DNA of 64,000 nt from Paragordius varius (Eukaryota > Animalia > Nematomorpha), in contig OZ176054.1 in assembly GCA_964247055.1 (NCBI GenBank), positions 7,378,001 to 7,442,000 of the forward strand. The letters are read 5' to 3'. The translations under genes were made by a program, and so were the position numbers. Below the pieces are notes generated by a model. That model had not been told where the DNA came from. It worked only from the letters and a program-made list of their open reading frames with translations, and made no database searches. This document shows positions 22,400-45,871 of this stretch, one piece after another; the first letter of the stretch is position 1, and the number at the start of each line of letters is the position of its first letter.

Positions 22400-23091
22400 T
22401 TTTATTTAAGAAGAACCATAATATTCTGGCCAGCGTCAATAATTTCTTTCATTGTTAAATGTTGGAGCATGGCTGATGTTTATAGTTTTGTTATTAGTTA
22501 TAATTATCGTTAATAATTTTAACACTAGAGATTCGTTTATAGACATCGTCATAATATCATGCTTTAAGATTTACCAGGTGACCGAAAACGAATAAATAAG
22601 GTCAGGATCTGAAAGTTTCCATATCCTTTGATTTTTTGCCAAGATTTGTATTCATAAAAACGCGATTTTTGCGTTAAGATTTTATTTAGTTACCTGTTGT
22701 GACATGAATTTCAATTGATGACCTGACTATAATCGCGCATTCAAATACCGTATTAAATTTTAATATGGCTATAAGAGTCTTAAAAAAATTATTTGGTAAT
22801 CATCATTTTTTGGGGGGGACTATCCAAGAGCAAATTTAAAAAAGCGCTCAATTATGATATATACCTTAATGCAAATAAGGCTCAACGGGGCTAAATCAAA
22901 ATATGTGTTGACTATTTGACGCTTTCATGAATGAAAAATAATTCAAAAACATCATATTAAAAGAGTTGAATATAAATAATACCCTTTAAATGTCTTGTCT
23001 GTTCATTCAATGAACATTGTAAAGTAGACGTTAGATTGGGGAAAATTAGCCAGATAAAGATTAGCTTTAAAACACCAATTTTAATATCCAT
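22400..23091 (-). CDS. Putative small secreted-protein gene (5' exons), disabled in copy B
   Basis: ATG 23091 reads MDIKIGVLKLIFIWLIFPNLTSTLQC...HLK with a phase-1 donor at 22982. Phase-1 exons follow near 22768-22693, 22626-22575 and from about 22466. Copy B lacks the ATG and donor and has frameshifts. Confidence 0.35.
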
Positions 23092-23759
23092 ATATGTAGA
23101 CAAGGAGATAAATAATCAATGGCATAAACTCCTAATAAATAAAATTAAATCTTTCTGTGCAATAATATTGATGAATTATTTTTATATTCTATTATTTATC
23201 TGTCTAAATCAGGGATATGTCAACCCAGGCAGCATTTCCCACTCTAAGAATTCGGCGCGCATTCGAAAAATCAAGATGATTAGTAATATAAATATTTTTT
23301 AGATTCCAAACATAAGATCAAGTTAAAAATTATGCAAAAATACAACTATTATTTTTTAAACATTTTACTCAAAAGTATGATCAATTTTACAGCATATTTT
23401 TTGCAAAATTTGGTATTTATTTAGTTAATAATTTTCCAAAATTATTGCTGGCCGCATACAATATGTCGGATGGTCGCATGTAACCCGCATGTTGGTCACC
23501 CTGGCCTAAATATTGGACGAAATAACTGTAAAACTCAATACGACTAGGAAGCGACCTTCATTTTAAAAAATTCAACTAGAGGTTCCATTTTTTCTGTCAA
23601 AAATGCAAACTCATTCTGCCTCAAAAAATAAATCATAATCTTTATATAAAATAAATTTATTTTACAAAAACATAAAATTCATACAATGTATATAATATAA
23701 AAATCATTAACATACATAACTTTAGAAATCATTAGATAATATAATTACAAATAATGATA

Positions 23760-25380
23760 TGCGTGGGTAAAACATGGTGTGCATGATAGGTTGAATGGCA
23801 CACGTTGTAAGGGAGAAGGGAAGGTATAGTAAAATTAAAGGTGAGAGTGATCATTTTTAGGCAAAAATAAAAAATAGATCCAAATATATAGGAGATGTTA
23901 TGGAGTTTAGGATGTATATATGTAAGGTGAGGTGTGGTGAGAGGTGATGATAGGTATGTAATATCGTAAGGATAGAGAATGTATGTGTTGATGTAATGTA
24001 AAAATATGTTGGGATATAATTTAATATAAAATTAAAAAAATAATCATCAAATAATAAAATATCCAAAAATAAGGAAATGTAATAAGTGAGTGAGGATGTC
24101 GTTTTGTAAGGTTAGGAGGTGAGATAGATGATTTTGTAATGATGGTGAATGGAAGATATGTATTGATGTTGTTCAAAGGAATATAATGTATAAAAAATCA
24201 ATTATAAAATAAAAATTCAAAAATAAGGCGATGTAATAAGTGTGAGACGATGTTTTTGTAAAGTGAGGAGATATGATGAGAGTAAATGGTAGGGTCTTTT
24301 GTAACGTATAGTATATGCAAATAAAAAATATATCAATAAAATAAAAAAGATCCCAAAAAATAGATATAATAATGTCCAAAAGTAAATAAAAGATGTGATG
24401 ATGCGATGTGTATGTAAGGTGAGATGGGTTAAAGTGTAAGTGTAATAAATGGTAATGGAGGATATGTGTTGATGGAATGTAAAAAATTAGAAAAGTATCC
24501 AAAATATAAGTAGGAGATGAGAAGTGTATGAGTGTGTTTATGTAATGTAAGGTGTTTGGTGATAAAAATAAATGGTAGGTGATTTGTAGGTATATGTGTT
24601 GGTGTAATGTAAAGTAATATAGTTAAATAAAAAATGTCAAAAATAAATAGGATATGTAAATAGTTCAAAAACTATTCTATATGTAAGGTGATGACTGATA
24701 AAAAAATTTAATGGTCGATGATTGCTAAGTAAAGTTTATGGACCTTTGTGTTGATGTAATTGTTAAGGAATATAATTGAGTCAAATAATAGATGTGATGA
24801 TTTATATGTAAAGTGGGTGAGGTGTGATGGTAATTAATGGATGATTTCGTAAGGATAATAAATGGAAGATATGTCTTGATGTAAAGTAATATGAAAATAT
24901 AATTTAAATAAAATAAAAAATATCCAAAACTAAATAAGAGTATCCAAAAAAATAAGTTGATGTAAGGTAAAGTGAGATAAAGGTTAGGTGATTTTGTAAG
25001 GATAATAAAGTAAGATGATTCATGTTGATGTAGTGTAAAGGAATATAGTTTAATAAAATAAAAAATAGTGTAGAAAAAATGTATAGGAGATGTGGTGGTG
25101 TAAATGTTAGGTGAAGTGAGGTTGATAAAATGGTATGTGATTTGGTAAGGATAAAGAATTTATCCAAAAAGTTTGATGTAATGAGTATAATGTGTGTGTA
25201 TGTGTATGTGTGTGTTAGATGTGTTGAGATGAGATGAAGTAAGATGTAAGGGAATTATTTGGGCAAAAGTAGAATATGAATGAAAGTAAAAATAATATAT
25301 AAAATAAATTACGATTGTAGAATATGCATATATAATTATAATAAAATGTATATAAAATGGAATATGTGTTGATAGTTTTG
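23760..25380. repeat. Degenerate ~140-bp G-rich/C-poor satellite, copy A
   Basis: Recurring gatgtaatgtaaag, tatccaaaaataa and gtaaggtgaggtg modules at about 130-180-bp spacing. Extreme G-over-C skew on the + strand. Confidence 0.85.
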
Positions 25381-25410
25381 AATTCGATTGGGCAACCCAT
25401 ACAACCAACA

Positions 25411-28400
25411 TCAAACACGGGTTTCCCAATAAAAGAACCCTATATCGAACAATGTTTGAAAGAAAATAGTTGTAAAACGAAAATAAAAGGATGGATTATG
25501 TTAAATTTTTTCATTAATTATCTTATATTAATAAAAAATATATATTTAATCTTGAGACTTACGATATGTTTCTATCAATAAACAATCAGTCCCCTCAACT
25601 TCATAATCACATGTATGACCCTTGCACTCCACCAAATCCAATCCTGGTAAGCCTGAATCACAAGACGGTTTATCGTTTGTTGATGGTGTCAATGAAAAAC
25701 TCTCAGATTCCCCATTAAATATATCGTTTTTCGGAACAATTTGTTCTATATTTAATATGAAAAAACTTGTAGTGAATAATTTGATAAAGTTTATAAAACT
25801 ATAATGTTACCGCATGAATCAGGCAAAATTATTTCTTTCTCGGTTAAATTTTCGCTCTCTACCGCATTTATTTCTGGCAAATTAGGATTTGGATTAGAAC
25901 GTATACCAATAGGGGAAGTTGGATTAAAATTAAAGTACTGATTTTCATCATTGAAAGCGACTCTTTTAGGGGCAATCGGTTCTAATAATAGATTATTTGA
26001 ATAATATGATGTTGATATTTACAAATTTAATTGGTATAATTTACGAACAAACTCAATTAATATATCTTAGCGTGTTGTTTTATAGTTTTTAACATCTACA
26101 AAATAGCAATTATTTTAATTAAAAATTAATAAAATACCATCTCTGGATCCGTTTTTGCCCTTGAGATTGGATTTCTTTGGAATCAAGTCCTCAGGCTTAC
26201 CAGGCGGATTCACAACTAAAATGCATATTAAAATTAGAATTATAGTTAGACAAATAACATTAATTAAATTAGTTTAAAAATTGTCCAGTTATATTAATTT
26301 TTGTGTCTAATTTAAAGTACCAGAATATTTAAAAGAATACAATGTATTGAAGTAATAATTTTTATACAATACTAGCGTGAATCTCGTGCTGCTACGGAGC
26401 CCGAGGAAGTCCTTCGGACTTCTGGGGGGGGGGGGGGGGGTTCGAGGTTTGGATTTGAATGGGTCTACCGTTTTTCCTGTAGATCACAAAGCCAGCATTT
26501 TCCATTTTTATAAATATATAGATTACCATAAATAATGTTTTAATATCCATATATCTTTTAACATGCTATACATATGATAGATACTCCTTACTCAGCATCT
26601 ATCATCAAAGAAACGCTTGACTAAAATTTTTGCCTTTTAATCGGGAATACGTGGAATCTTTATTGAATTTTTAAGGTCTCATACCTAGGACGAAAAATCG
26701 ATTTAAAAAATTATTTTTGTGGACTTTGTTTTTTGAAAAAAATGGCATTTTACGGGGGGAGCGGGTAAAAAGAGGGCCTAAATCAAAAAAGTGACTCGAC
26801 TATGTTCGGCGCAATCGAAAATAAGTAAACAAAAATCATATTTGAAATTGAATGGTCCAACACGTTCTCCGGAAAATTGTCTCAAAAACACGATTTTGTG
26901 GACTTCTGTTTACAAAAAAAACCCGTTTTTCATACGGGGTGGGTCCGAACTGGGGGCCTATTTCAAAAAAAGGGCGAAGCTATTGTCGGGACATTTATTA
27001 ATGATTATATTTTTTCGATATTTGGATTTGATTGGGTCTACCGGTTTTCCTGTACCAGATCACAAAGCCCATTTTCCATTTTTATAAATATATAGATTAA
27101 AATGCATATTAATTTGATTGCAATATAACCGAAAATTTAAACACATAATTAACCATCTCAAATTATATTATGTTGCTAAAATTCTCTTGTTTTAATATAA
27201 ATGTTTAGCAAATCACATCGTTTTTCATATTTTTTGCCATTTTTGCGTAACATAAGGAAAAGCTTTCAATTATAACATAACAATTTGCCTTTTATTAACG
27301 TGTTTTACAAAATTTTGAAATATTTTAATGGTTTTTTAAGCGAGTATTCTTTATTAAAAAAATTTCTGATTAACTAAATAAAATTGAATTTATCACGTAT
27401 GTTTACCAAAAACGATTAATTACTAACCAATTCAGCACTAATTATTTGTATATATTTTTAAGTAAGAAAAACAAAAGTCTAGTTTATTTTAAAACAAAAT
27501 ATACCATCTACGCTTCAAATTCACCCTTTAACAATTAAAATTCACCCTTGAACAATACAAATTCACGCTTAAACGAAAAATTCAAATTCACCCTTAAACA
27601 AACAATTCAAATCCACCCTAAAATAAATCATGTGTTTTTTAAGATTAAAATTCACCTCTTTTTTATATTAAAAAATGAAATTTCGTTCAATAATACTGAA
27701 AAAAGCTATGCCATAAATATATTTTTAGGGTGCATTTGGATTGTTCGAGGGTGAATTCGAATTGTTCAAGGGTGAATTTGATTCATAAATGTATTGTCAC
27801 TAAAATGTTAATAGTTTACCCTTTAAAGCGTCTTGCTTTTTCACCATTCCAAAACAAGAACATACCCGATTCCACCACTTCTTGGAATCTAAAAAAACGC
27901 AAACATTTTTCAAACTTACAGAAAAGGTCCACATTATTTAAAGTAACTTACATAGTTTGATAATAAAAATATACCAAAATTAAATTTATTCTAAATATGA
28001 AAAGTTTATTAAAATTTGTTTCCAATCGTCATACAATAATATGGTAAAACCTAGTAAAATAATTCTGAATTTAAATGTTTAGTTTTTGGCTCTACTGATT
28101 TTATAATGTGAGTACAATATCTATATCTGCAGACACATTGTCAAACGGTTTCCTTTTTATTCAACAATACGATTCCAACGTCCCCTAAAATATACTTCTG
28201 AACTATAAATTATTTATAAAATTTAAAAATTTAAACATATAAACCTTGTCTAATGACCTTTCTTTCATTATTTTTATTCTTTTTAATACAATTGACGGCA
28301 AAAATGTTTTTCATTAGATGGAGATACAAATGTTAATTACAAGATAAAATATTTAAATTTGATTGTTGCATTCTATAATGTTAACCATTTAAACTATTAA

Positions 28401-28950
28401 AAATTACTGTAGCAAACATATATATATATATATATATATTAGGGTTTAATAAGTAAAAAACTTTTTTAAAATAAATTCTTTTCCATAGGGTTATTGGGCA
28501 ATTCTACAATCATAGTTTTAGTTTTTTACGCATAAAATAATTATCTATACACAAAAGGAAAATGAATTAAAAACACTATATATGGTTAAAAATATTATAA
28601 AAGAGACAAATTAATCTGATTTATATTTTGTCAATTTTTATTTTGTTGGTAATTTGATTTAAATTTTGCAATACAACTCTTTTCATTTTTAAAAGTTTTG
28701 ATATTAGCTTTTAAAAACTATACAATGACAACATATAAGCTTGCTTCTCAAATTGATCTAGTATTAAGATCAAAACTGTACAACAATTTAAGTAACCAAA
28801 TATATATATAAATACATATTTTTCAATTAAAAATAGAAACAGCTTTTCTATGGTTTTTTTTAAATATTAAAAAGTATGTTATAAATGTAAATAACCTTTT
28901 CCCATCGCGTTCCTTTCGCCATTTCGCTTCTTTCTAATCCAGAAAGTCAT
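25411..28950 (-). CDS. Uncharacterised 194-aa protein with RVxF-type PP1-docking motif, paralog A
   Basis: Exons 28950-28896, 27888-27820, 26215-26138, 25981-25811, 25745-25563 and 25439-25411; all GT-AG, all phase 1; 585 nt open. MTFWIRKK...KKSNLK...KRVAFNDENQYF...YWETRV*. Confidence 0.78.
26372..27096 (-). mobile_element. Non-autonomous Helitron-like element with a duplicated 5' end
   Basis: The minus strand begins A|TC(tatatatttataaaatgg) at 27096 and ends with an imperfect hairpin (cgtagcagcacg) plus CTAG|T at 26372. A second copy of the ~70-bp 5' terminus ends at 26522. Absent from copy B. Confidence 0.65.
27500..27795. mobile_element. MITE family 2 copy (intronic)
   Basis: tataccat start; ~20-bp repeats ttgaacaattcaaattcaccc on the left and their reverse complement on the right. 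Confidence 0.75.
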
Positions 28951-29469
28951 AATAAAAGTTTTTTATGAAAAAAATTTAGTGATGTTTGAAAGAATTTAGA
29001 TTTTTAATTATAAGGAAGGTTTATAAAATGATTGTTGGCTTAATCATATTAAATAAAGAAAATAATTAAATAATTTATTATAGATGGAAATGGGCTATAT
29101 ATATTTGAAACAAAATGGTTTTTATTATTATTAGTTTAACTGTTTTTTACTAAACAATAATTTTCTGCCATTCAGGTTTTAGCAGAAGTTGGAATCGAAT
29201 TTGGTTAAAGATCCAATCCGTTTTTCTAAAAGGGTTTGGTTAAATAGTTTCGGCAGGAAATTTTTTGAATGCCACCGTTCCATTTTTTCAGTCAAATGGT
29301 GCAAATTTCGTTTGCATTTGAAAAAAGTTTATTGGTTTCTGTTACAATTAACACTTCGATTCAAATTGGAGTATCTAAATACTTCATACTATATTTAAGT
29401 AAAATTTTTAAAAAACTATTGAAATAAACGGTCCCAATTTAAATTTATGCTCCTATCCTAATCTATATG

Positions 29470-29915
29470 AATAGGTCGAAATATTTAAATAAAATTTGGT
29501 TTTGAAAAAAAAAAGCTGCATATCAAACTACTTCGACGCCATTTTTATTTTACAACATTTTTCTAAAATATCGTGTTTATTTAGTTTTAAAGCTAATAGA
29601 AAAGCTAATGTTTCATTTAAATCTCATCTAACATTTATAATAACAGAAAAAGTGGTTTATTTTGTATTATTTCCAAATTTAGCTAATGCACACATGTCAT
29701 GTTGACTAAATTTTACCTTTCGGTTTTAGCTTAAAATAAGTAATATTAAGTGTTTTTGAATAAAAAAATTTATATATTTCGGTTTATTAATATTGTCTAA
29801 GTGCAATATTTGCCATGGTTTTGATTCCTTCCATATTTTTAAAAGAATTTAATTTTAAACAGGCCTAGGGTATTTAACTACCCCATTTTGAATTGAAGGA
29901 CTAAGATGAATGTGT
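29470..29915 (+). repeat. Dispersed repeat, homologous to 61125-61740
   Basis: Shared blocks aaataaaatttggttttgaaaaa, tacttcgacgccattt, tgtcatgttgact and ttttaaacaggcct, in the same order. Confidence 0.75.
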
Positions 29916-29922
29916 TGTATCT

Positions 29923-30550
29923 AGGGTTGTGCATTTGACTGCTTTTTCAAAAAAGTCCGGTCAGACCATGGTCATGACCACGGTCATGGTCACTTTTTTT
30001 AAGTACATATCACGCGATATTGGATTGTGAAAATAAACTTTAAACGACTTGAGTTTATGTTTTTCTTAAAATTTGTATTATACATTTTTTTGATATTTAT
30101 TATTTAAAAATATTTATATTTAAATTTAATCAAAAATTTTGTTTCCAAATAAATTCACATGTTTGTGACCTTCTGTTCAAATACATAGCTTTAAATACTG
30201 GATATTACAAATATTTACCTAATTTGTTTTACACTTTCTTTCATCATTGAAATATCCAATTATAAAATGTTTACTCATTTTATTGGTTCACAATCACATA
30301 TATGGAATAAGTGCATATTTTGCAAAGTGCCTTATTGTTTTGTGAAATAACTGGATATGCATAAATGCTAATGTTATAAGGATGCATATTCAACAATTTT
30401 ATATTGTTAAATAATCATATTAAAATATTTTAATATTTTTTAGAATATTAAAAAACAATAAAATCTTACTATCTCTCTTCCAAATAATGTATCAGCATTT
30501 TTCAAAAAACAGCCGTTTTTTTAAAATGACCATGGTCAGCACAACTCTCG
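29923..30550. mobile_element. MITE-like insertion specific to copy A
   Basis: Inverted ends agggttgtgc..tgac / gtca gcacaactct with subterminal gaccatggtca repeats. Not in copy B. Confidence 0.5.
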
Positions 30551-30669
30551 TTGTATCCAGTGTAATAAAATCTCGCAAAAAACCATGAGAAAAAAAATAA
30601 TTTAAAATTAAAATTAGAAAATTTTGAAAAATTAAAATTTTGGGAAGTATATTATTTGTATCCAAAATT

Positions 30670-31790
30670 ACAATAAAGATGATGGCTCCGGTTCTAATCC
30701 CCGATTTTAATTTTCTAATATCAATGTAACATCTACAAATCAGGTAAATGATACCTATACAAGGAAATTAGTTTGGTTCCCCATGCCAGAAAGTCAACTA
30801 ATAACCCTATACATGCGGTTAAAAGGTTGATTGAAAAACACAGTGAAAGAGGAAGAGCTATACGTGGTTTTAATTGACAGAAAATGCGCTTGACATAATT
30901 CCAAGAGAAATATGGTGTAGCTTCCGTCGTAAAAATATGCCCAAATGTTATATAAAATTGTAACAAATAATGTATGAATCCCCCTCTTAAAACTCCCCAA
31001 TTATCAGATTGCTTTGCAAAGCATGACGTCTACCAAGCTCATCGCTTAGTCCGTTGTTGTTTATAATATGTATGGATTAGGTACCAAAGTTGTTTCAGGT
31101 TGTTATTTCATGTATGCGGATGACATAATCATTATGTCTGAGAGCTGAGTTAGAGAATGGGTCAAACTGAATGAACACGGTCTAAAAGTCAAAATATCAA
31201 ATATTGAATTTATTAGCTCTAGTAATCAGCAACATGAATTGTGATGCGGATTGGGTTTTGAAGGGTAAACAAAGGTGCAAATATTTAGGGACAATTTAAA
31301 ATTTAGATGGCTCAGAATGATATTAATTTAAATTAAGAAAAGTTGGGTAAATTGGAAGAAAATTTCGAGCGTTAGAGTGAAAAGTAAGATATACAGTTCA
31401 GTTTAAACCCACAATGATGCAAAAAATCCGAAGAAAGACATTTTAACGTTACTTAAATGAAAATGATTAGAATGATGTGTGGGGTAACAAGAAAGGACAT
31501 TTAGGAATATATCTAATCGTGTGAGCGCGGATGTTAAACCGATATCGGAAGGAAAGACAAAAGAGTTACGTTGGTTTGGGCTCATTGAAAGGAGAAACTT
31601 TCATTATATTGCAAAAAAAATTAGAGAGTCATAAAGTTGAAACGAGGACATGGGACCCTTAAAACGAGATGAATGGTTGGACACAATAAAGCAAGCAAAA
31701 TACAAGTAAAATCAGAAGACGCAATAGATAGAGTTCTATGGCGAGACAGACTTCTTACATGGCAGCTCCCACGAGTGAAAACATGTAAAG
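30670..31790 (+). mobile_element. Decayed RTE-clade non-LTR retrotransposon (RT and 3' region), copy A
   Basis: Frameshifted RT motifs (HAVKRLIEKH..VVLID), YADD at 31113-31124, and the RTE-like tail RWFGLIERR..W(L)DTIK..DAIDRVLWR. Confidence 0.85.
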
Positions 31791-32869
31791 TGATAATAAT
31801 AAATGTAACATTATATCAGATAAAAGTTAAGAAATATTCAATATTTCCTCTGTTAACATAATTTAAAAAAGAAAAATTTTTCTTCGAGAAAAATATTTGA
31901 CGTTATTATGTTCGTAAAATTTAGGATTTTTTGTTCGTGATTGATTTTGACGTTCAATAGGCCTAAAAAGGTTGCTAAAAATTATATGGATACCACCTAT
32001 AAGGTAATGTTCCTGTCAAAGTATCAAAAATCTTTATAATTTTTCTAATGATTTAACAAATTTGGCATTTTTCCAAGAATACAATCCGGTTTTTGGCTGG
32101 AAGATTGATTTCGGTTTAACTTTCCTGGATTTTAGTTTTGAAAAATATATTGTGTCTTTATGCGCATTGAATCCATATTCTAAAGGCTAATGGTCCTCTA
32201 GAGGAAATTTGGGACTATTAGACAAAGATACCTGTATTTATGGGGGTCTTTATTTTAATTATATTTTACAAGCAATTAAAATTAATTTTTGGGCACTTAA
32301 ACATGTATTAATTTATAAAAACTCATTTTTTTATATTTGTTATTATATACCGATGTTATTTTTTTAATGTAATGTTAGATTTACGTTAATCATACCCATT
32401 TAATATTGTACTTTTAATTGTAGTTTTGATGATTTAAGGCAGGTGCATTCGGGCCAAAAATATAAATTTATTTATTATTCATACGGAGGTTTACATGTTA
32501 ATAAATAGTTTTTCAATAAACTAATGGCTCACAGAAACTAATACCTGGGTACTGTTTGACCATTTTAGTATCATAAATAATTTTATATAAAAATATAACT
32601 TATCAATCAAAATGCATCCTAAGAACACAGTTTGTGGCCACGGTTGACAAAAGAGGGCCCTTTTTGACTTCTAAAACATCAAACTTTATGATGTGTCAGA
32701 GACAGCGGAGTTTTTAATAGATAAAAATAAAACAGTATGGATATATTACATCTATACAATATGTATTGTGCCAAAAGAAATCTAGATACATCCAATTATT
32801 TTCTACGGTATTTTGTCATTGAATATCCTTCCTTATTACATCATCTAATATGATCAGATAATCAAAACT

Positions 32870-34792
32870 CTTTCCCATGTCCCTTGATTTCTATTAAATA
32901 CCCAGACGTCAGTAAAACCCAAAGTTCTTTCACTCTATAAGGTATATATTTTGAGAAGATTTTTTAAGCTTCTGAAAAAAATTTATCTAGTCAATTATTG
33001 AAATATTGAGTAGATATTTGAAGGCGTTGTAAAACGGTTGTTGGAATTTTAACTTACCCAAGATTTTTATCGCTCTTCTGCACACATTACGGGCTCCTAC
33101 CCTACCATGCAGTCTGAAAAATCAGATCCAAATCCTAACATAAAACATTCAACGAAAGCACATACAAACTTTGAAACGGGCGATAGCGAAACCACTGAAA
33201 ATGCTCAAAACTTTTTATCCCTCCCTAGTGGTTCAAAATGTGCTCAATCCCTACAACAGCTAGTTTGTAAGGCCGAAACTTTCTTGGATGCAAAAGAACG
33301 AATTTATGCTAAACGTCTAGCATATTCAAGGTATGGACTTACTGGACTACGTGCCCCTAAACAATGTAAGGATGCAAAAACCAAACACCAAAGTAGCGTG
33401 CACGAACGATATATAATTCTCACGGTGACAACAATCGAGCCTTGTCATTTATATCACGCGAGTTTAATCCTTGTGACATTTATCAATGTACACATATTTT
33501 TTTGAGTTCATTTTATAGCTAGCAGTAATGATTAAACAATGGTATCTCCTAGAATTTATGTAAGGCGCGCTAAAAATAAAATATCAAATTTTATAATTAA
33601 ATAATTTTATTAATAAAATATAGGCTAAATTGATATTTTTTGAACAAATTGAATATTTTTTGCAAATTTTGGCAAGAAGCTAAAAATGGTAAAGATAATA
33701 TTGGATTTAGCTTTATATGTTTGAAATCAAAAAATATTTAATGGCAATATATTTTTAGAATGCAGCCCGCTGAATTTTTTGAATCAAAAAGTCGGTCCGA
33801 GAAGCTGTTTGTAGACAATTAAACTAAAAGTTTAGTGAAATATTGTTATGTGCTTAACTTGGTTTTTTTAAATCTTTTGGTAAACTTTACTTATAAATTC
33901 CTTTTTACTCGAAACCTTTCTGTATATTTATGTTAAAAATGTAGCTCACGATTACGCCCAGGTGTTTGGAAATATTAAAAATATTTATGATATGAATGAA
34001 TCGAAAAATGCAAATTTAATTGAGCACAAAAGTATGGTTACGGGTCAACAGGATGGAATTCACGAAAAGGAATCATCATTGTCCAAAATGTCTGGATTAC
34101 TTTTTCGGTTTTTCTATAATATTTTGTATAAATTATGTATAGTGGGGTCGTAAACTCAAATACTATTTTTATTGACAAAGCGTTTGAAATATATTTGTGT
34201 GTAAAGTTTACTAACTAAAAAGGTTTATATATATCAAACCTTCAATAAACATCGATACAAACTATTGATTGCGTCCTTACATATAATATATTTTTTAACT
34301 TTAAATTCTTAAAATTGCATAATTGAGTCCAGATTTAAGATTCACTTTTTCCACAACATTTTTCAACAACATTTTTACGGTATGTATAATAGGTTTGGTA
34401 AAAAGGCAGTTCCACCACCATCTCCTATTAGTAAGGATATGAATTACAAAAATTTACAAGATTTAACTGCCCTGACACAGGCAAATGACCAAAATTTAAC
34501 ACTGTCAAACATTCACACCCCTTTTTCTATGCCACAATCAAGCGTCTCTCAAACCAAAATTGAGATTGAAGAAAAAAATACTCATGCATTTCTATCATTT
34601 CCGGCTAAAAATGCGGCTTATGCCACCATTGTCCTTAGCGAATGGTGTAAGGAATTGTCAACTTTGGCTTCGGAAATGTCGATAGCACTTTTGATAATTT
34701 TACAGAGTACTGCCACAGCGAATATCATCCCTTTTCCCCTCAACAACAGATTGGAAAGGGTTTCTCTTAAGGACGATGGCAAATCGCTGTAA
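32870..34792 (+). pseudogene. 5'-truncated FHIP1 duplicate (3' exons only)
   Basis: Starts in the middle of the exon that spans 16846-17024 in the intact gene. Small deletion in that exon, a frameshifting deletion near 33390, and loss of ~1.1 kb of intron. The last exon (to 34792) is still open and nearly identical to 19746-20145. Confidence 0.88.
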
Positions 34793-36446
34793 AAATTATT
34801 TCAATTTTACGAAGAAGGACAATGTCACATATGCTTTTTTATTACATGGTAATTAAAAGATTATACTGCTTTTGAATATTATTTTGTATTAAAATTTTAA
34901 TTTTTATTTCTGTTTGTTTTTGTTAACTTTACCATTATATTACGGAAATTTAAGAGTCACACGAAATTTAATTAAAGATGGTTTTAAATTTATTTTTGGA
35001 AAATAGTTAATATTTTTAAACGGATCATTATTTTTTTTATATAATGTTTTAATTTTAGTTTAATAAATTAAGCCATAACGATAAAATTTAGGAAATTCCA
35101 TATAATATCGCCGAAATATTAAAAAAATATTGGACGTATGACAAAAAAATAAATTTATTATTTTTAAATATTTTTCGTAAAATTAAGAAAACCCCATTTT
35201 ATCTGCAATAATTTCAGATTTATGAAGATATGAAGATCATGTGTTTGAAGCGTTTAATTTGACCCAGGACTAATATTTTACCAAAAGAGATTGGATAAAA
35301 AATTCGGAAAAAAATTTCTACATCAAGAAAAATGGTTGAATAATGTTGGTTTATGTTATGTTTTTTTTATTTTTTAAAGACGTATATAATCTTCTTGCAC
35401 CTTGCCATATCAACTTATGCAATCACAATTTATTTATATTAATAATTATTTATTATAATTATTATTGATATTTATTCCAAGCAATAATTAGTAAGCATAT
35501 ATTTCTGATTATATGGCATTTGACAAAATTTTACTCGCTGTACTGTATAATGTGTATTGTACAAGACAAAATAAATTTATATTTTATTCACAACATATTT
35601 AATTAATTACAACTAATTTTATCAAGTTTTAATATACATTGGTCGTTTTTTATAATGGCTGCTGTGATTAAGCCCACTATGATTTAACTTGAGTTTTTTG
35701 AATTTTTGAATATTAAAATAAAAAAATTTGCAAACGTATTATGGATGATTATGGTGCACTGTGAGCAAACAAAATATTTATTGTCATTGATTAAAAAGAT
35801 AAGTTATAATATATTCACTGAGAGTATCTTTCAAAGCGTGAATTTTATATTCAAACATATGGAATAGGTATAGTGACGACAGTTGAAATTTTTACAGATT
35901 TTACGCATTCTTCACTAACTATCAGTGAGCCTTATTTTTATGATTAGCGATTTAACTATATTTCTACACAGATAAGATTTCGGGGATGACCCATATTTTT
36001 GTAGCCATCTTTATAGGGTGGAGCTAAACAGAGAGTTTATTTAAAAAGTAGGGAGAACGGAAAAATCCCCCAAAGACACGATTTTGGGGACTTAAATTTT
36101 TTACGAGCGAGAAACTTAGTGGTTAATCAAAAGTTCGATTAACTTCGGCGCACACATACACAAGTATGCATAGCCAAATAAAATGGACATACGCATTTTC
36201 GCAAAATTGCTTGAAAAAGATGATTTTACTCTTTTAACTACTCTTCGAAGGAAAGGGGATAAATTTTTGTTTTCATATCAACCCAATTATGGCCCTTAAG
36301 TTGGGAACTATATATTGTACTTATATGAACATTGATTTTGCCCGATAAAGGAAGCAAAAAATTTATATTATAACTTTAGCCAAAAATCTTGTTTTCATTT
36401 ATTTAATTTGAAAAGCAATATTAATTTATTTTTTTAAAAACTCTAG

Positions 36447-36482
<36 letters not shown>

Positions 36483-37849
36483 GGACCCATAATATTTTGG
36501 TCAGTCTCAGTGGTTTATTATTAAATTTTGGAGCATGCCTGATATTTATAGTTCGGTTACTAGTTAGAATTCTCGTAAAGAAATTTAACACTAGATATTC
36601 GTATATAACATCACTACTTTGTTTATTTAATCAATATCATACTTAAGATTTACCATGACCGAAAACGAATAAATAAGAGTTGGATCTGAAAGTTTTTATG
36701 GACTTTGATTTTTTGCAAAAATGAAGGCTTTTTTCATATTTTTTATGCCAAGATTTATGTTCATAAAAACGCGATTTTCGCGTTAAGATCTTATTAGTTA
36801 CCTGTGACATGAATTTTAAATTGTATCCCTGACTATGATCGTGCATTCATAAAAAAATGTAAATACCGTATTAAATATTAGGGCTATAAGAATCTCAAAA
36901 AATACTTAGTAATCACGATTTTTTGGGATGGGTGTATTCCAGAGCAAATTCCAAGCGCATTATGATATTTATCTTATGAAAAATAAGGCTCAACGAGTCT
37001 AAATCAAAATATATGTCGACTATTTTGACGCTTTCATGAATGAAAAATAATTCAAAAACATCATATTAAAAGGATTGAATTTAAAAATATCCTTTAAAAG
37101 TCTTGTCTGCCCATTCATTGAACATTGTAAAGTAGACATTAGATTGGAGAAAATTAGCCAGATAAAGATTAGCTTTAAAACTTACACTTTAATATCCAAA
37201 ATTATTGGAGAAGGAGAAAATAAATAATCAATGGTATAATCTAATAATAAAATTTAATCTTTCTGAGCAATAATATTGATGAATTTTTTTATATTTTATA
37301 TCTGTCTAAATCAAAAATTTCCAACACAAATATCTTAGGCAGCATTTCGACTCAAATAATCCGACGCGCATTTGATCAAGATGATTAATAATAAATATTT
37401 TTTAGAATTCAAACATAAATAACTGTTAAAAATAATGCAAAAAATATAATTACTATTTTTTTTACAAATTAAGTATCAATTTTACAGCATATTTTTGCAA
37501 AATTTGGTATTTATTTGGTTAAATTTTCCAAAATTTTTGCTGGCCGCATACAATGTGTCGCATGGTCGCATGTAACCCGCATGTTGGTCACCCTGGTCTA
37601 AATATTGGAATGAAACAACTATAAAACTAAATACGATTAGGTAGCTACCTTCATTTTAAAAATTGCAACTAATAGAAGTTCCATTTTTTAGACAAAAACC
37701 CAAACTCATTCTGCCTGAAAATAAATCATAATCTTTATATAAAATAAATTTATTTTATAAAAACATAAAATTCATACAATGTATATAATATAAAAATCAT
37801 TAACATACATAACTTTAGAAATCATTATAATATAATTACAAATAATGAT

Positions 37850-40470
37850 ATGTGTGGGTAAAAGATGGTGTGTTTGAGAGGTAGAATGGCTCAAGTTGTA
37901 AGGAAGAAGGGAAGGTATAGTAAAATAAAGGTGAGAGTGATCATTTTTAGGGCAAAAATAAAAAATAGATCCAAATATATAGGAGTGATGGGATTTAGGA
38001 TGTATATATGTAAGGTGAGGTGTGGTGAGAGGTGATGATAGGTATGTGATATCGAAAGGATAGAGAATGTATGTGTTGATGTGTAATGTAAAAATATGTA
38101 GGGATATGATTTAATATAAAATTAAAAAAAATAATTATCAAATAATAAAGTATCCAAAAATAAGGAGATGTAAAAAGTGAGTGAGGATGTCGTTTTGTAA
38201 GGTTAGGAGGTATGATGAGAAGATAGATAGGTGATTTTGTAAGAATGGTGAATGTAAGATATGTGTTGATGTTGTTCAAAGGAATATAATGTATATAAAA
38301 TCAATTATAAAATAAAAATTCAAAAATAAGGAGATATAATAAGTGTGAGACGATGTTTTTGAAAAGTGAGGAGATATGATGAGAGTAAATGGTAGGGGCT
38401 TTTGTAAAGATATGATTTGTTTTGTAATGTATAGTATATGGAAATTACAAATATATCAATAAAATAAAAAAGATCCCAAAAAATAGATATAATAATGTCC
38501 AAAAAATAAAAAGATGTATGATGAGATGTGTATGTAAGGTAAGATGAATTGAGGTCTAAGAAAATGGTAATAAAGGATATGTGTTGTTGTAAGGAAAAGA
38601 TCAAAAAAAGTATCCAAAACATAAGTGGGGTGTATGTTTATGTAATGTAAGGTGATGCGTGATAAAAATAAATGGTAGGTGATTTGTTAGCATAAAGATT
38701 TGAATTGATGTATAGAATTAGAGGAATGTAATTTAAATATAAATAAAAAATAGCGTATTAAATACAAAAAGAAGATGTGATGCAATGATGTAAGGTGAGG
38801 TGGGATGTAAATAAAAGTTAGGTGAATTAGTAACGATAGTAAAGTATTGAGATATATATTGATGTAATGTAAGGAGTATATATATATATTTCAAATATGT
38901 AAAAAATTATTGTCAAAATAATAATTCCAAAAAATAAAGATCTGTGATGATGGGTTGATGTTCGGTGAGGTGTGAAGAGAATAGTACGTGGTTTATGTAA
39001 GGATAGAGCGATATATATATCGATGTAAGGTAAAGAATATAGTAGTTAATAAAATATTACAAGTGTAAATATTAAGAAAGATGTGATGGGTATGAGTTGT
39101 GTAAGTAAGGTGAGGAGTGATGAAGGTTTAAAGATGATTTTGGAAGGATAATGAATGGAAGATATGTATGATGTAATTAATGTAAAATGGAATATAAAAA
39201 TAATTTAATTTAAATAAAAAGTATCCAATAATTAATAAAGGCTCCAAAAAATAAATAAAAGATATGATGATGAGATGTGTATGTAAGGTTAGGTGGCAAG
39301 TATATGATGATTTTGGAAGGAAGATGGAATAAATAAGTTGATGTAAGGTGAAGGAATATAGTTTAATAAAATAGAAAAATGTATAAAGGATTAGTGTTGT
39401 AAATGTTAGGTGAAGTGAGGTTGATAAAATGGTAGGTGATTTGGTAAGGATAAAGAATTTATTCAAAAAGTTTTATGTATGAGTATAAAGTGTGTGTATG
39501 TGTGTGTTAGATGTGATGATGAGATGAGTTAAGGTGTGAGTGGAATAAATGATAATGGAGGATATGTGTTGATGTAATGTAAAAGATTAGAAAAGTATCC
39601 ATAATATAAGTGTGAGGTATGTGTATGTAATGTAAGGTGTTCGGTGATAAAAATAAATGGTAGGTGATTTGTAGGTATATGTGTTGGTGTAATGTAAGGT
39701 AATATAGTTAAATAAAAAATGTCGAAAAAATAAATAGGATATGTGTGTGAATAGTTCAAAGATTTATTCTATATGTAAGGTGATGGGTCATAAAAAGTTA
39801 ATGGTCGATGATTCCTAAGTAAGGTTTATGGAGATTTGTGTTGATGTAATTGTAAAGGAATATAATTGTGTCAAATAATAGATGTGATGATTTATATGTA
39901 AGGTAGGTGAGGTGTGTTGGTAATTAATGGATGATTTCGTAAGGATAAAAAATGGAAGATATGTCTTGATGTAATCCAAAGTAATATGAAAATATAATTT
40001 AAATAAAATAAAAAATATCCAAAAATAAATAAGATTATCCAAAAAAATAAGTTGATGTAAGGTAAGGTGAGATAAAGGTTAGATGATTTTGTAAGGATAA
40101 TAAAGTAAGGAGATTCATGTTGATGTATAGTAAAGGAATATAGTTTAATAAAAAAGTAGTGTAGAAAAAATGTATAGGAGATGTGATGTTGTGAATGTTA
40201 GGTGAAGTGAGGTTGATAAAATGGTATGTGATTTGGTAAGGATAAAGAGTTTATCCAAAAAGTTTGATGTAATGAGTATAAAATGTGTGTATGTGTATGT
40301 GTGTGTTAGATGTGTTGATGAGATGTAGTAATGTAAAGGAATTAATTTGGGAAAAAGTAGAATATGAATGCAAGTAAAAATATATATATGTAGAAATATA
40401 TATAGTGAATGTGCATATATAATTATATTAATAAAATGTATATAAAATGGAATATATGTTTTTTATAGTT
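37850..40470. repeat. Degenerate ~140-bp G-rich/C-poor satellite, copy B (about 1 kb longer than A)
   Basis: Same modules as 23760-25380. Extra block at about 38620-39590, and an internal higher-order match between 39340-39510 and 40120-40330. Confidence 0.85.
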
Positions 40471-40505
40471 TTGATTTCGATTGGGCAACCCACATACAAC
40501 CAACA

Positions 40506-43076
40506 TCAAACACGGGTTTCCCAATAATAGAACCCTATTTCGAATAATGTTTGAAAAAAATAGTTGTAATACGAAAATAAAATAGGGGTTTATGTTAAAT
40601 TTTTCCATTAATTATCTTATATAATTAATAAAAAATATATATTTAATCTTGAGACTTACGATATGTTTCTATCAAGAAACAATCAGTCCCCTCAACTTCA
40701 TAATCACATGTACGACCCTTGCACTCCACCAAATCTAATCCTGATAAACCTGAATCACAAGACGGTTTATCGTATGTTGATGATGTCAATGAAAAACTCT
40801 CAGATTCCCCATTAAATATATCGTTTTTCGGAACGATTTGTTCTATATTTAACATGAAAAAAATTGTAGTGAATAATTTGATAAAGCTTATAAAATTCAA
40901 ATGTTACCGCATGAATCAGTCAAAATTATTTCTTTTTCGGATGGTTTTTCGCTCTCTACCGTATTCATATCTGGCAAATTAGGATTTGGATTAGAACGTA
41001 TACCAATAGGGGAAGTTGGATTAAAATTAAAATACTCAATTTCATCATTGAAAACGACTCTTTTGGGGTCAATCGGTTCTAATAATAAATTATTTGAATG
41101 ATATGATGTTGTTATTATCAAATTTAATTGGTATAATTTACGAACAAACTCAATTAATATAACTTAGCGTGTTGTTTTATAGTTTTTAACATCTACAAAA
41201 TAGCAATTATTTTAATTAAAAATTAATAAATTACCATCTTTGGATCCGTTTTTCCCCTTGAGATTGGATTTCTTTGGAATCAAGTCCTCAGGCCTACCAG
41301 GCGGATTCACAACTAAAATGCATATTAAAATTAGAATTATAGTTAGAAAAATAACATATAAATTAGTTTAAAAATTGTCCAGTTATATTAATTTTTCTAA
41401 TTTAAAGTAGTATTATATTGATTTAAACGAAATTTCCTTTTTCAAAAATATAATTTAGGTAATTTTAAATCTTAAAAAACACATAATTTATTTTAGGGTG
41501 TATTTGAATTGTTCAAGGGTGAATTTGAATTGTTTAAGGGTAAATTTGAACTGTAAGCGGTTTATTCTTTGCTTTTAAAATAAAATTGACTTTTGTTTTT
41601 CTTACTTAAAAATATATACAAATTATCACTGCTGAATTGGTTAATGATTATTTTTGTAAAACATATGTGAAAAATTCGATTTTCTTCATTCATATATCAG
41701 AAATTTTTTTGATAAAGAATAATAAAATCTCTTATAAAAGCTTGATAACCTATTATAATTATTATGTTATAATTGAAAGCTTTTCCCATGTTTCGCAAAA
41801 ATAGTACAATATTAAAACATCAGAATTTTATCAATATTATATAATTTGAATTGCTTAATTGTGTATTTTTCGGTTGTACTGCAATCAAATTAATATGCAG
41901 TTTAATATCGTATAAAAATTACTTTAATACATTGAATATATATATATATATATATATGAAAAACGCATTGTCACTAAAATGTTAATAGTTTGTTTACCCT
42001 TTAAAGCGTCTTGCTTTTTCACCATTCCAAAACAAGAAAATACTCGATTCCACCACTTCTTGGAATCTATAAAAATGCAAATTTATTTTAAACTTACAAA
42101 AAAGCTGTTCCACATTATTTAAAGTTACTTACATAGTTTATAATAAAAAGATACCAAAATGAAATTTACTCTCAATATAAAAAGTTTATTAAAAATTTTT
42201 TTCCAATCGTCATATATAAATCTAAATTTAAATGCTTAGTTGTTGGTTTTACTGATTTTATAAATATCTATATCTGCATCGTCAAACGGTTTCCTTTTTA
42301 TTCAATAATACCATTCCAACGTCCCTTAAAACAACTTCTGAACTATAAATTATTTATAAAATTTAAAAATTTAAACATATAAACCTTGTCTAATGACCTT
42401 TCTTTCATTATTTTTATTCTTTTTAATACAATTGACAGCAAAAATGTTTTTCATTAGATGGGGATATAAATGTTAGTTACAAGATAAAATAATTTAAATT
42501 TGATTGTTGCATTCTATAATGTTAATTATTTAAACTATTAATTATTACTGTAGCAAAAATATAATATATATTAGGGTTTAGTAAGTAAAAAAATTTTTTA
42601 TAATTAATTCTTTTCTATAGGTTTTGGGCAATTCTACAATCATAGTTTTAGTTTTTTAAACGTTTAAAATAATTATTTATAGCCAAATGGAAACACATGA
42701 ATTACAAACATTATATATGATTAAAATTATTATAAAACAGACAAATTAAGGCTGTTTTTTAACTTGTCAATTCATATTGTGGTAATTTGAATTTAAAATT
42801 TTAGGCCAACTCTTTTCATTTTTGAAAGTTTTGAAACTAGCTTTTAACTATTCAATGAAATATATCAGCTTGATCGGAATTTTCTCAAATAAGATCTAGT
42901 ATTGAAATCAAAATTACCCATCAATTTAAGTAGCCAAATATGTATAAATATTTTTGATTAAAAATAGAAACAGCTTTTCTATAGTTTTGTTAATATTGAA
43001 AAGTATGTTATAGCATTTAACCTTTTCCCATCGCCTTCCTTTCGCCATTTCTCTTCTTTCTGATCCAGAAAGTCAT
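40506..43076 (-). CDS. Uncharacterised 194-aa protein with RVxF-type PP1-docking motif, paralog B
   Basis: Exons 43076-43022, 42066-41998, 41312-41235, 41078-40908, 40842-40660 and 40534-40506. Exon lengths are identical to paralog A (55/69/78/171/183/29), with no indels or stops. KRVVFNDEIEYF, ends YWETRV*. Confidence 0.78.
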
Positions 43077-43609
43077 GGTAAAAGTTTTTTATGAAAAAAA
43101 TTTAGTAATGTTAGAATGAATTTAGATTTTTAATAAGAAAGGTTTATAAAATGATTGTTGGCTTAATCACATTAAATTATGATAATAATTAAATAATTTA
43201 TTATAGATGGTAATAGGTTATATGTATTTGAAACAAAATGGTTTTTATTATTATTAGTTTAACTGTTTTTTACTAAACAATATTTTTAGCCATTCAGGTT
43301 TTAGCAGAAGTTGGAATCGAAAACTTTTTTGGTTAAAGATCCAATCCGTTTTTCTAAAAGGGTTTGATTAAATAGTTTCGGCAGGAAATTTTTTGAATGC
43401 CACCGTTCCATTTTTTCAGTCAAATGGTGCTAATTTCATTTGCATTTGAAAAAAGTTTATTGGTTTCTGTTACAATTAAAATAAAATCTCTCAAAAAACC
43501 ATATATAACAATTTTCTCGGTTGTTTTTTTCTGAAAAACAAATAATTTAAAATAAAAATTAGAAAAATCTTAAAAAATAAAAATTTTGGAAAATATATTT
43601 GATAAAATT

Positions 43610-44730
43610 GCTATAAAGATGATGGCATCGGTTCTAATCCCCGGTCTTCAATTTTCTAATTTCAATGTAACATCTACAAATCAGGAAAATGATATCTAGA
43701 GAAGGAAATCAATTTGGTTTCACATGCCAGAAAGTCAACTAATAACCCTATATATGCGGTTAGGAGGTTGATTGAAAAACACAGTAAAAAGAGGAAGAGG
43801 TATAAGTGGTTTTAATTGACAGAAAAGACGTTTGACAGAATTCCAAGAGAATCTATTTGGTGGAGCCTCCGTCGTAAAAATGTGCCTAAATGTTATATAA
43901 AATTATAACAAATAATCTAACACCTTTAGGATTAAAAACTCCCCAAGGATTGTAGGATCACTTTGCAAAGCATGACGTCTACCAAGGTTCATCGCTTAGT
44001 CCCTTGTTGTTTATAATTTGTATGGATGAGGTAGCCAAAGTTGTTAATCAAAGGTCAGGTTGGTATTTCATATATGCGGATGACAAAATCCTTTTGTCCG
44101 ATTTACTGGCTGAGTTAAAGGGTAAACAAATGGGTCATCAAACTGAATGAACGCGGTTTAAAAGTTAAAAAATCAAAAAATGAATTTATTAGCTCGTAAT
44201 CAGCAACATAAATGGATGTGTTGTGGATTGGGCTTTGAAGGGTAAACAAAGGAGCAAATATTTGGGGGCAATTTTAAATTCAGATGGATAGATTAGTTGG
44301 GTAAATTGGAAGAAAATTTCGAGGTTAGAGTGAAAAGTAAGATATCAGTGCAGTTTACACCCACAATGATGCAAAAAATCCGAAGAAAGACATTGTAACG
44401 TTACTTAAATAAATGTATTGAATGATGTGTGGGGTAATAAGAAAGGACAGTTAAAAATATATCTAATCGTGGGAGCGCGGATGTTAAACCGATATCGGAA
44501 GGAAAGACAAAAGAGTTACGTTGGTTTGGGCACATTGAAAGGAGAAATTCTCATTATGTTGCAAAACAATTAGAGAGTCATAAAGTTGAAACGAGGACAT
44601 GGGCCCCTTAAAAGGAGATGAATGGTTGGACACAATAAAGCAAGCAAAATACAAGTAAAATCAGAAGACGCAATAGATAGAGTTTTATGGCGAGACAGTA
44701 CATAACAGCTCCCACGAGTGCAAACATGTA
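43610..44730 (+). mobile_element. Decayed RTE-clade non-LTR retrotransposon, copy B
   Basis: NQFGF..YAVRRLIEKH..DRIPRESIWWSLRRKNVPKCYIK; YADD at 44073-44084; WFGHIERR. Confidence 0.85.
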
Positions 44731-45871
44731 AAGTGATAATAATAAATGTAACATTAAATCAGATAAAAGTTAAGAAATATTAAATATTTCGTCTGTAGAA
44801 TTTATCGATTACCTTAATTATAAATATATTAATATAAAAATTAAATAAATTTTTCGTTAAAAATATTTGACGTTATTATGTTAGGGAAATTTAGGATATT
44901 TGTTCGTAATTGATTTTGACGTTCAATAAGCCTAAAATGTTGCTAAATTTATATGCACATTTAGCACCTATATTGTATTTTCCGGTCTAATTAGCAAAAT
45001 TTTTTATAAATTTTCTATTGATATAAAGTGCCAAAAGTACGATCTGGTCCTTTATTTTTTAATAATAAAGACCCGTATAACAAATTTGGCATTTTTCCGA
45101 GAATGCAATCCGATTTTTGACTGGGATACCCATTTCGAACTTTCCTAGATTTTAGCTTTGAAACATATATTATATCTTCATGAACATTAAATCCTTAATT
45201 TAAAGGCAAATGGTCCTCTAGAGGTAAAAAATTGTGATAATTAGACAAACATGCCTGTATTTGGGAAAATTAATTTTTGGGCACTTACAGATGTTTTAAT
45301 TTTATAAAGACTATTTTTAATAAGAATCGACGTTAATTTTTAATTGTGGTCTTGATGATTTAAGGCAGGTGCATTCGGGCCAAAAATATAAATCTATATC
45401 CTATATTCCTACGGTAGTTTTATAAATAAGTAGTTTTCAATAAACGAATGGCGCACAGTAACCATTACTTGGGTACAGTTTGACCATTTTAGGATCATTA
45501 ATTTTAAATAAATTTTAATAAAACTTAACAATCAAAACGCATCCCAAGAATACAGCAGACCTAGGTAGCTACGGTTGACTAAGAGGGCTCTTTTGTGTTC
45601 TTTAACATCAAACTATATGATGTGTCAGAGACAGCCAAGTTTTTAATATATAGAAATAAATCAGTATAGATCTATTACATCTATACAATATATATTGTGC
45701 CAAAAGATTTTAATCTAGATAAGAATAGAAAAATCCAATTATTTTTTACGGTATTTTATCATTTTTGAAATAACATATTACATCAAAAATCACCAGATTA
45801 TCGAAGCTCTTTTCTATTGATTAACTAAAAAACTTTCATTGATCGATATATTGTTAACTATCTCTAATTGT

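Follow-up and report, generated by a model that had tools for sequence, protein, structure and literature searches.

Introduction

Does a pair of small genes in the nematomorph Paragordius varius encode proteins that dock protein phosphatase 1 (PP1)? The question is raised by a stretch of 64,000 nucleotides (nt) of contig OZ176054.1 (assembly GCA_964247055.1, forward strand), referred to here in its whole length as the window, which lies at C5:7378001-7442000 of the 110.5-Mb assembly and is AT-rich (~27% GC). A first-pass annotation, made from the letters of the window, described there a paralog pair coding for an unrecognised protein of 194 amino acids (aa), a candidate PP1 regulator with a PDZ-type tail. 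Sequence comparison places both genes, which arose by a recent tandem duplication, in a lineage-restricted family that comprises at least 12 small proteins and, in addition, six distant members. Judged from its motifs, the most likely function of this family is docking of the PP1 catalytic subunit, a reading that we hold tentatively.

Two intact gene copies in a tandem duplication

Self-BLAST of the window delimits a tandem duplication of ~9 kb, made of colinear pieces (Table 1) with one inverted and rearranged stretch within intron 2 (27096-27695 versus 41906-41416). Each half carries one gene on the minus strand: copy A starts at 28950 and stops at 25411, and copy B starts at 43076 and stops at 40506. 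The exon models were anchored in copy A by reading-frame pieces and then mapped onto copy B. In both copies the six modelled exons measure 55, 69, 78, 171, 183 and 29 nt, the splice sites are AG...GT throughout, all introns are in phase 1, and the resulting coding sequence of 585 nt (194 aa) contains neither a stop nor an indel. The splice models thus bear out the first-pass description of six equal-length exons that stay open despite rearranged introns; intron 2 alone spans 1604 nt in copy A versus 685 nt in copy B.

The two copies differ by 32 nt and 21 aa. The exon 1 changes, said earlier to be mostly synonymous, are found to be ATT/ATC and CGA/AGA together with a single replacement, N14K. 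A predicted alternative first exon, 1b, lies in intron 1; it starts with an ATG of its own, ends in a phase-1 donor and codes for the same peptide in copies A and B, with one synonymous change. Exon 1b also occurs in the C3 genes introduced below and is similar to the first exon of the C4 pair.

The window pair belongs to a larger gene family

Searched in all six frames with exons 5, 4 and 3, the genome yielded 12 family loci: the two in the window, eight on C3 (1.61-1.94 Mb) and two on C4 (11.13-11.14 Mb). The paralog pair of the first-pass annotation consists of two real and intact genes, which are part of a 12 + 6 gene family. All 12 paralogs share the six-exon layout with phase-1 AG/GT sites at homologous positions, and ten of the models are complete, with intact frames of 187-194 aa. 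The other two, L013 and L015, are partial models whose exon 1a lies beyond the examined piece or was not recovered; they are unbroken as far as seen. L013 (C3:1821800-1828800) also has a 3.8-kb intron between exons 2 and 3, in which a 179-aa open frame resembles transposon debris.

A profile search of the genome added a distant cluster of six further loci (L019-L022) at C4 3386488-3458663 (3.386-3.459 Mb). These six share an exon 1 (MKFF.RIF..KTTNGGE.QEKGKG) with a phase-1 donor, an exon 2 (WRRYLCCISSCCFKK...) with the string CCISSCC, and one exon, PKKSVTFSEVNQYHSWTPVSPVSSPS, with the docking-like block PKKSVTF..YH.WTPVSP. Downstream of the shared exons they carry acidic DxF[PS]EVEEIY repeats and a different end, RNEAD. 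Only the docking-like block (KKSVTF..YH.WTPVSP) and the N-terminus are common to the distant six and the main family.

Tandem repeats carry an RVxF-like string

The family protein begins with a basic N-terminus containing one invariant Cys (KWW.R...CF), followed by the linker PPGKP..KKSN[ILM]K. Its C-terminal part consists of two tandem ~57-aa repeats, each on one phase-1 exon, and a last exon that codes for nine residues and ends Y[WL]E[TI][RD]V. Exons 4 and 5 each encode one copy of the repeat, and exon 4 peptides match exon 5 of paralogs. In a MAFFT alignment the 24 repeat units stand in register; P, K, F, F and S never vary, and N, T, P, P, E and E hardly do. The repeat opens with PK[KR].V.F-N-[DE]-[DE]-x-x-[YF]-F-x-W-T-P-x-S-P, and the T-P and S-P sites are invariant.

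The string KRV(A/V)F and the YF five residues on, both noticed in the first pass, are present in the window pair and prove to be invariant across the 12 paralogs: repeat 1 reads KRV[VA]F in 12/12 genes, with [YF]F at +6/+7 throughout. Repeat 2 provides a second copy of the motif in the ten other paralogs, as K[KR]TVRF in the C3 genes and KRVTF in the C4 pair. The window pair has lost this second motif, reading PKNDIF instead, and with it the conserved W and T (FNFNP). At invariant residues the codons vary synonymously (Arg AGA/AGG, Val GTC/GTG, Phe TTT/TTC, three codons each for Pro and Gly), which indicates that selection acts on the amino acids. The block made of the RVxF string and the hydrophobic pair is the best-conserved part of the protein across the 12 paralogs and the distant six.

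Both ends of the protein are conserved in part. At the N-terminus, KW, R and C-F are invariant across the family. The WW..CSCF patch reported earlier is present in copy A and one of its Cys is the invariant one, but the first Cys of CSCF occurs in copy A only (copy B has FSCF) and is not conserved in the family. The last exon keeps Y, E and the final V in all 12 genes. The proposed PDZ-type tail ETRV holds for ten genes, namely the window pair and the eight C3 genes, but not for the C4 pair, which ends EIDV.

AlphaFold2 was applied to repeat 2 with the 24-unit alignment. The mean predicted local distance difference test (pLDDT) score is 53.7, consistent with a disordered protein. Apart from a weak hairpin of the Cys-rich end, whose strands cover residues 44-50 and 53-59, no secondary structure is predicted. 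In the modelled unit pLDDT drops below 50 over the motif region, a value that refers to repeat 2, while the intact motif of the window pair sits in repeat 1. The family proteins are thus probably mostly disordered.

Searches outside the genome returned no relative. A 155-aa natural read-through (exon 4, intron and exon 5 of paralog L014) found no homologous protein among those of 85-271 aa. An hmmsearch with the repeat profile against 1.84 billion representatives gave 22 matches at E <0.001. Twelve of the 22 were inspected and are translated bacterial repeat arrays (FNP[RL]SPCGER) or the 11-residue repeat of one large repetitive protein; the remaining ten follow the same multi-stretch pattern of summed tiny matches and were not taken as relatives either. 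An alignment-based scan of metagenome contigs matched 305 patterns and yielded no relative. With no Pfam match, no PDB match and no homologue among the 1.84 billion representatives, the protein is as unrecognised as first described.

Evidence for and against docking of PP1

Three published definitions of the RVxF motif were applied, [RK]x(0,1)[VI]{P}[FW], [KRL][KRSTAMVHNQ][VI]{FIMYDP}[FW] and [HKR][ACHKMNQRSTV]V[CHKNQRST][FW], along with the preference of the motif for basic residues before and acidic residues after it (PMC3792071). In all 12 genes KRV[VA]F of repeat 1 agrees with the first two definitions; all three are matched by repeat 2 in the ten other paralogs and none by KNDIF of the window pair. 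The flanks agree with the preference, being basic on the N-side and acidic on the C-side (PK-R..F-N-[DE]-[DE]). RVxF motifs are also expected in exposed or disordered regions, which the prediction for repeat 2 fits. A hydrophobic pair is expected 5-8 residues past RVxF and stands at +7/+8 in Ki-67 and RepoMan (PMC5005033); the [YF]F of repeat 1 falls within this range. The nearest ESM-Atlas clusters by language-model features, with scores of 0.83 and 0.81, carry the Pfam family PF10488 (PP1c_bdg), which we treat as a lead only. The genome holds at least four loci of the PP1 catalytic type.

Several results weigh against PP1 docking. Shuffles of the same protein contain a loose RVxF string in 29% of cases, a stricter one in 9% and a stricter one with a hydrophobic pair in 2%. 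The motif alone is therefore weak, and its weight comes from its conservation across 12 paralogs. Repeat 1 fails the strictest definition because position 4 is V or A. SILK, a companion motif, must stand N-terminal to RVxF (PMC3792071), and a true SILK is lacking: the SILK-like KSNLK of the first-pass annotation is present in the window pair and varies in the family as KSNLK, KSNIK or KSNMK, none of which fits [GS]IL[KR]. The downstream Arg, also named there as part of the docking string, is not conserved in the family. No homology to a known PP1 regulator was found, and Pfam stayed blank on the six exon peptides and the 24 repeat units at E values up to 10. The PF10488 profile matched nothing in the whole genome, a weak test in which the controls were silent too. 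A PDB profile search with the repeat hit no PP1-binding chain and gave chance matches only (E >=0.6). No RNA run shows the locus, and the runs that contain it are DNA, because their contigs cross introns. One small 'RNA?' run (X6) placed nothing on the locus, and its words are all but absent from four more small 'RNA?' runs with that species label (X7-X10). Finally, the conserved block spans ~30 residues, long enough for another partner.

This last point leads to the strongest alternative. One distinct possibility is that the family is real and selected and the RVxF match coincidental, the PKRVVF..YF.WTP.SP block binding a partner other than PP1, such as a proline-directed kinase, another peptide-binding domain that reads TP/SP, or a domain part that folds on binding. 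A block that extends far beyond a 5-residue motif, the invariant T-P and S-P, the missing homology to PP1 regulators and the 9-29% of shuffled sequences with RVxF-like strings would all fit such a partner. However, coincidence would have to account for correct flanks and correct spacing to the hydrophobic pair, for a motif that occurs twice per protein in ten genes, and for the fact that this very block is the only one common to the distant subfamily; the PP1-binding Pfam family of the language-model neighbours points, weakly, in the same direction. The PP1 reading is strengthened by family-wide conservation and remains a motif-based candidate.

A proposed model for docking

We propose a model in which the family proteins would dock PP1 via repeat 1 and, in most paralogs, via repeat 2 as well. 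The repeat opening, the acidic residues, the hydrophobic pair and WTPxSP have the layout of those RVxF/PhiPhi strings that fold onto PP1. Phosphorylation of the invariant TP and SP sites could control binding or inhibition. A PDZ scaffold could anchor the complex through the C-terminal tail, and the invariant Cys could be acylated.

PP1 owes its specificity to docking proteins, hundreds of which exist that are unrelated to one another and often confined to a single lineage. If the family binds PP1, it would represent a new, expanded docking set (12 + 6 genes) in a poorly studied animal lineage, and its tandem docking modules would be a convenient natural case for studying how a small protein with two RVxF strings behaves. 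For now the family is a motif-based PP1 candidate and not a discovery.

Comparison with known systems

The closest parallels are NIPP1, spinophilin/neurabin, PNUTS and Ki-67/RepoMan, which combine RVxF with PhiPhi. The family likewise appears disordered and has [KR][KR]V.F, flanks that turn from basic to acidic and a hydrophobic pair 6-7 residues downstream, and its ~30-residue conserved stretch matches in size what folds onto PP1 in those complexes. Unlike these proteins, the family shows no sequence homology to them, lacks a conserved Arg motif or KiR-type extension, and has its string duplicated in tandem within one small protein.

The ESM-Atlas neighbours point to a second group, PPP1R15, GADD34, ICP34.5 and DP71L, whose shared domain is PF10488. 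The family motif K[KR]V.F.E.V..[YF][YF] presumably resembles the start of this domain; the remainder, which we take to include GPWE and ARDR.RF, is absent from the family. In contrast to PPP1R15, the family exon peptides are not fitted by the PF10488 profile, nor is anything in the genome, the genome search being weak.

KNL1, Inhibitor-2 and RIF1 join SILK to RVxF. The family has a Lys-rich S-x-[ILM]-K ~15 residues N-terminal to its motif, in the right order, but S-N-[ILM]-K misses [GS]IL[KR], and in the distant subfamily EILK stands just 5 residues from the motif.

Channel and receptor tails bound by PSD-95/Dlg are examples of class I PDZ ligands with the pattern E-[ST]-x-V. Ten of the 12 genes would end in such a ligand, E-T-R-V-COOH on its own small exon, which fits [ST]-x-hydrophobic-COOH. 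Unlike these ligands, E-I-D-V of the C4 pair is hydrophobic at -2, and the distant subfamily ends RNEAD. S-acylated peripheral membrane proteins have a Cys cluster beside basic or hydrophobic residues near the N-terminus and no transmembrane segment. With these the family may be compared through its one invariant Cys (CF); the other Cys of CSCF is found in copy A only, and the distant subfamily has CCISSCC.

Selection on the family and on the window pair

The ratio of non-synonymous to synonymous divergence (dN/dS), proposed earlier as a check, is 0.51 for the window pair by NG86 (dN 0.048, dS 0.095), and other estimators give 0.54-0.68. The value lies below 1, but marginally: 11 of the 32 changes are synonymous over 118 synonymous and 464 non-synonymous sites (one-sided binomial P = 0.045). 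Several non-coding stretches of the duplication are also as alike between the copies as the exons are. The pair alone says little on selection.

Among the paralogs, pairwise dN/dS is 0.15-0.66 within C3 (mostly 0.25-0.4), 0.27 for the C4 pair, 0.37-0.44 between C3 and C4, and 0.46-0.72 between the window pair and the remaining paralogs. A three-point estimate, rough and made with NG86, which is unreliable at such divergence, assigns dN/dS of ~0.9 to the window pair branch, ~0.3 to C3 and ~0.45 to C4, and the first of these values speaks against PP1 docking. By sequence, the window pair is the fastest-changing and most derived branch and keeps the first docking string only.

These values raise the question whether the family is functional and the window pair decays or neofunctionalises under relaxed constraint, so that its motifs no longer report function. 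The marginal dN/dS of the pair, its branch value against those of C3 and C4, the loss of the second docking motif (PKNDIF) with the replacement of W and T (FNFNP), and the non-coding flanks, some of which match the exons in similarity, would all fit relaxation. Yet the 12 splice sites, the frame, exon 1b, the first motif and ETRV are kept in both copies, and by a rough estimate an AT-rich frame of 585 nt that evolves neutrally should have gained stops or indels at a dS of ~0.5 from C3. We regard relaxed constraint on the window pair as unlikely. That the models are no genes at all, with open frames and splice-like sites arising by chance in a duplicated non-coding segment, is very improbable: it would suit the missing RNA evidence and the missing homologue outside the genome, but not ten complete intact models that share their exon phases across three chromosomal clusters (the partial L013 and L015 being unbroken), dN/dS well below 1 and invariant residues that vary synonymously.

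A G-depleted tract follows every family gene

Every family gene, the distant subfamily included, is followed directly 3' of its stop by a G-poor tract of 1.0-2.6 kb. On the sense strand G makes up 1-7% per 200 nt, and the pooled 13.8 kb consist of 31% A, 24% C, 3.5% G and 41.5% T; beyond the window, composition was taken from L009, L012, L016, L017, L019 and L021. Within the window, strong GC skew is confined to the bins of the two tracts. Tracts of different clusters are 65-72% similar, in patches, and are enriched in the 8-mers CCTTACAT and TTTTGGAT. A genome search with the tract matched solely family loci on C5 and C3, on the strand of the gene and downstream of it, so the tract is not a dispersed repeat. 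Its composition has been kept while its sequence drifted, which could be explained by constraint on a 3' untranslated region (UTR) or by a strand-specific mutation process.

The presence of such a tract on every member is a separate oddity of RNA biology. It is tempting to combine it with the docking model: the family protein would be an acylated adaptor that uses two tandem PP1-docking modules and a PDZ tail to hold or switch two PP1 at a membrane scaffold, with an additional constraint at the RNA level, for example from an unstructured C/U-rich regulatory 3'UTR. As a whole, this joint reading is improbable.

Features of the duplicated segment

Table 1. Coordinates of the two duplicated blocks, the modelled exons and the 3' tracts (positions within the window)
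Feature	Position	Strand	Basis or remark
Duplication block, copy A	22893..32778		self-BLAST against 37001-45707, 84-91% identity
Duplication block, copy B (start possibly before 37001)	37001..45707		self-BLAST
Copy A exon 1a, ATG; MTFWIRKKRNGERNAMGK + 1 nt	28896..28950	-	phase-1 donor G|GT; homologous exon in 8 other paralogs
Copy A alternative first exon 1b, MKNIFAVNCIKKNKNNERKVIRQ + 1 nt	28245..28314	-	ATG, phase-1 G|GT donor; homologue in C3 copies
Copy A exon 2, basic, KKWWNRVCSCFG; Cys30 family-invariant	27820..27888	-	splice model and paralog alignment
Copy A exon 3 (PPGKPEDLIPKKSNLKGKNG)	26138..26215	-	splice model and paralog search
Copy A exon 4, repeat 1; KRVAF 25953-25967, YF 25932-25937	25811..25981	-	repeat alignment
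Copy A exon 5, repeat 2; degenerate docking motif PKNDIF, Cys-rich end	25563..25745	-	repeat alignment; weak beta-hairpin prediction
Copy A exon 6, FFYWETRV + stop	25411..25439	-	splice model
G-depleted tract directly 3' of copy A stop, 1-7% G on sense strand	23800..25410	-	composition
Copy B exon 1a	43022..43076	-	mapped from copy A
Copy B alternative first exon 1b	42385..42454	-	same peptide as copy A
Copy B exon 2 (FSCF)	41998..42066	-	mapped from copy A
Copy B exon 3	41235..41312	-	mapped from copy A
Copy B exon 4, repeat 1; KRVVF 41050-41064	40908..41078	-	mapped from copy A
Copy B exon 5, repeat 2	40660..40842	-	mapped from copy A; repeat alignment
Copy B exon 6, FYYWETRV + stop	40506..40534	-	mapped from copy A
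G-depleted tract 3' of copy B stop, ~2.6 kb, internal duplication	37900..40505	-	composition and self-BLAST

An Rfam search of positions 20000-48000 gave no match. Between the gene copies, a 136-aa open reading frame at 34382-34792 (+) matches Pfam PF19311 (KELAA motif) with 31 bits against a cut-off of 23.4, and the adjoining 132-aa frame at 33107-33505 matches nothing. Intron 2 of copy A consists in part (26342-27100 and 27458-27830) of a very high-copy repeat, over which the summed contig depth in three DNA runs is thousands-fold that of neighbouring bins; a run of 14 G lies inside this repeat at ~26427-26440. Intron 2 also contains a 21-nt unit (TTCAAATTCACCCTTAAACAA) that forms arrays on either strand, at 27514-27623, 27727-27781 and 41495-41554, and these arrays coincide with the stretch that is inverted and rearranged between copies A and B.

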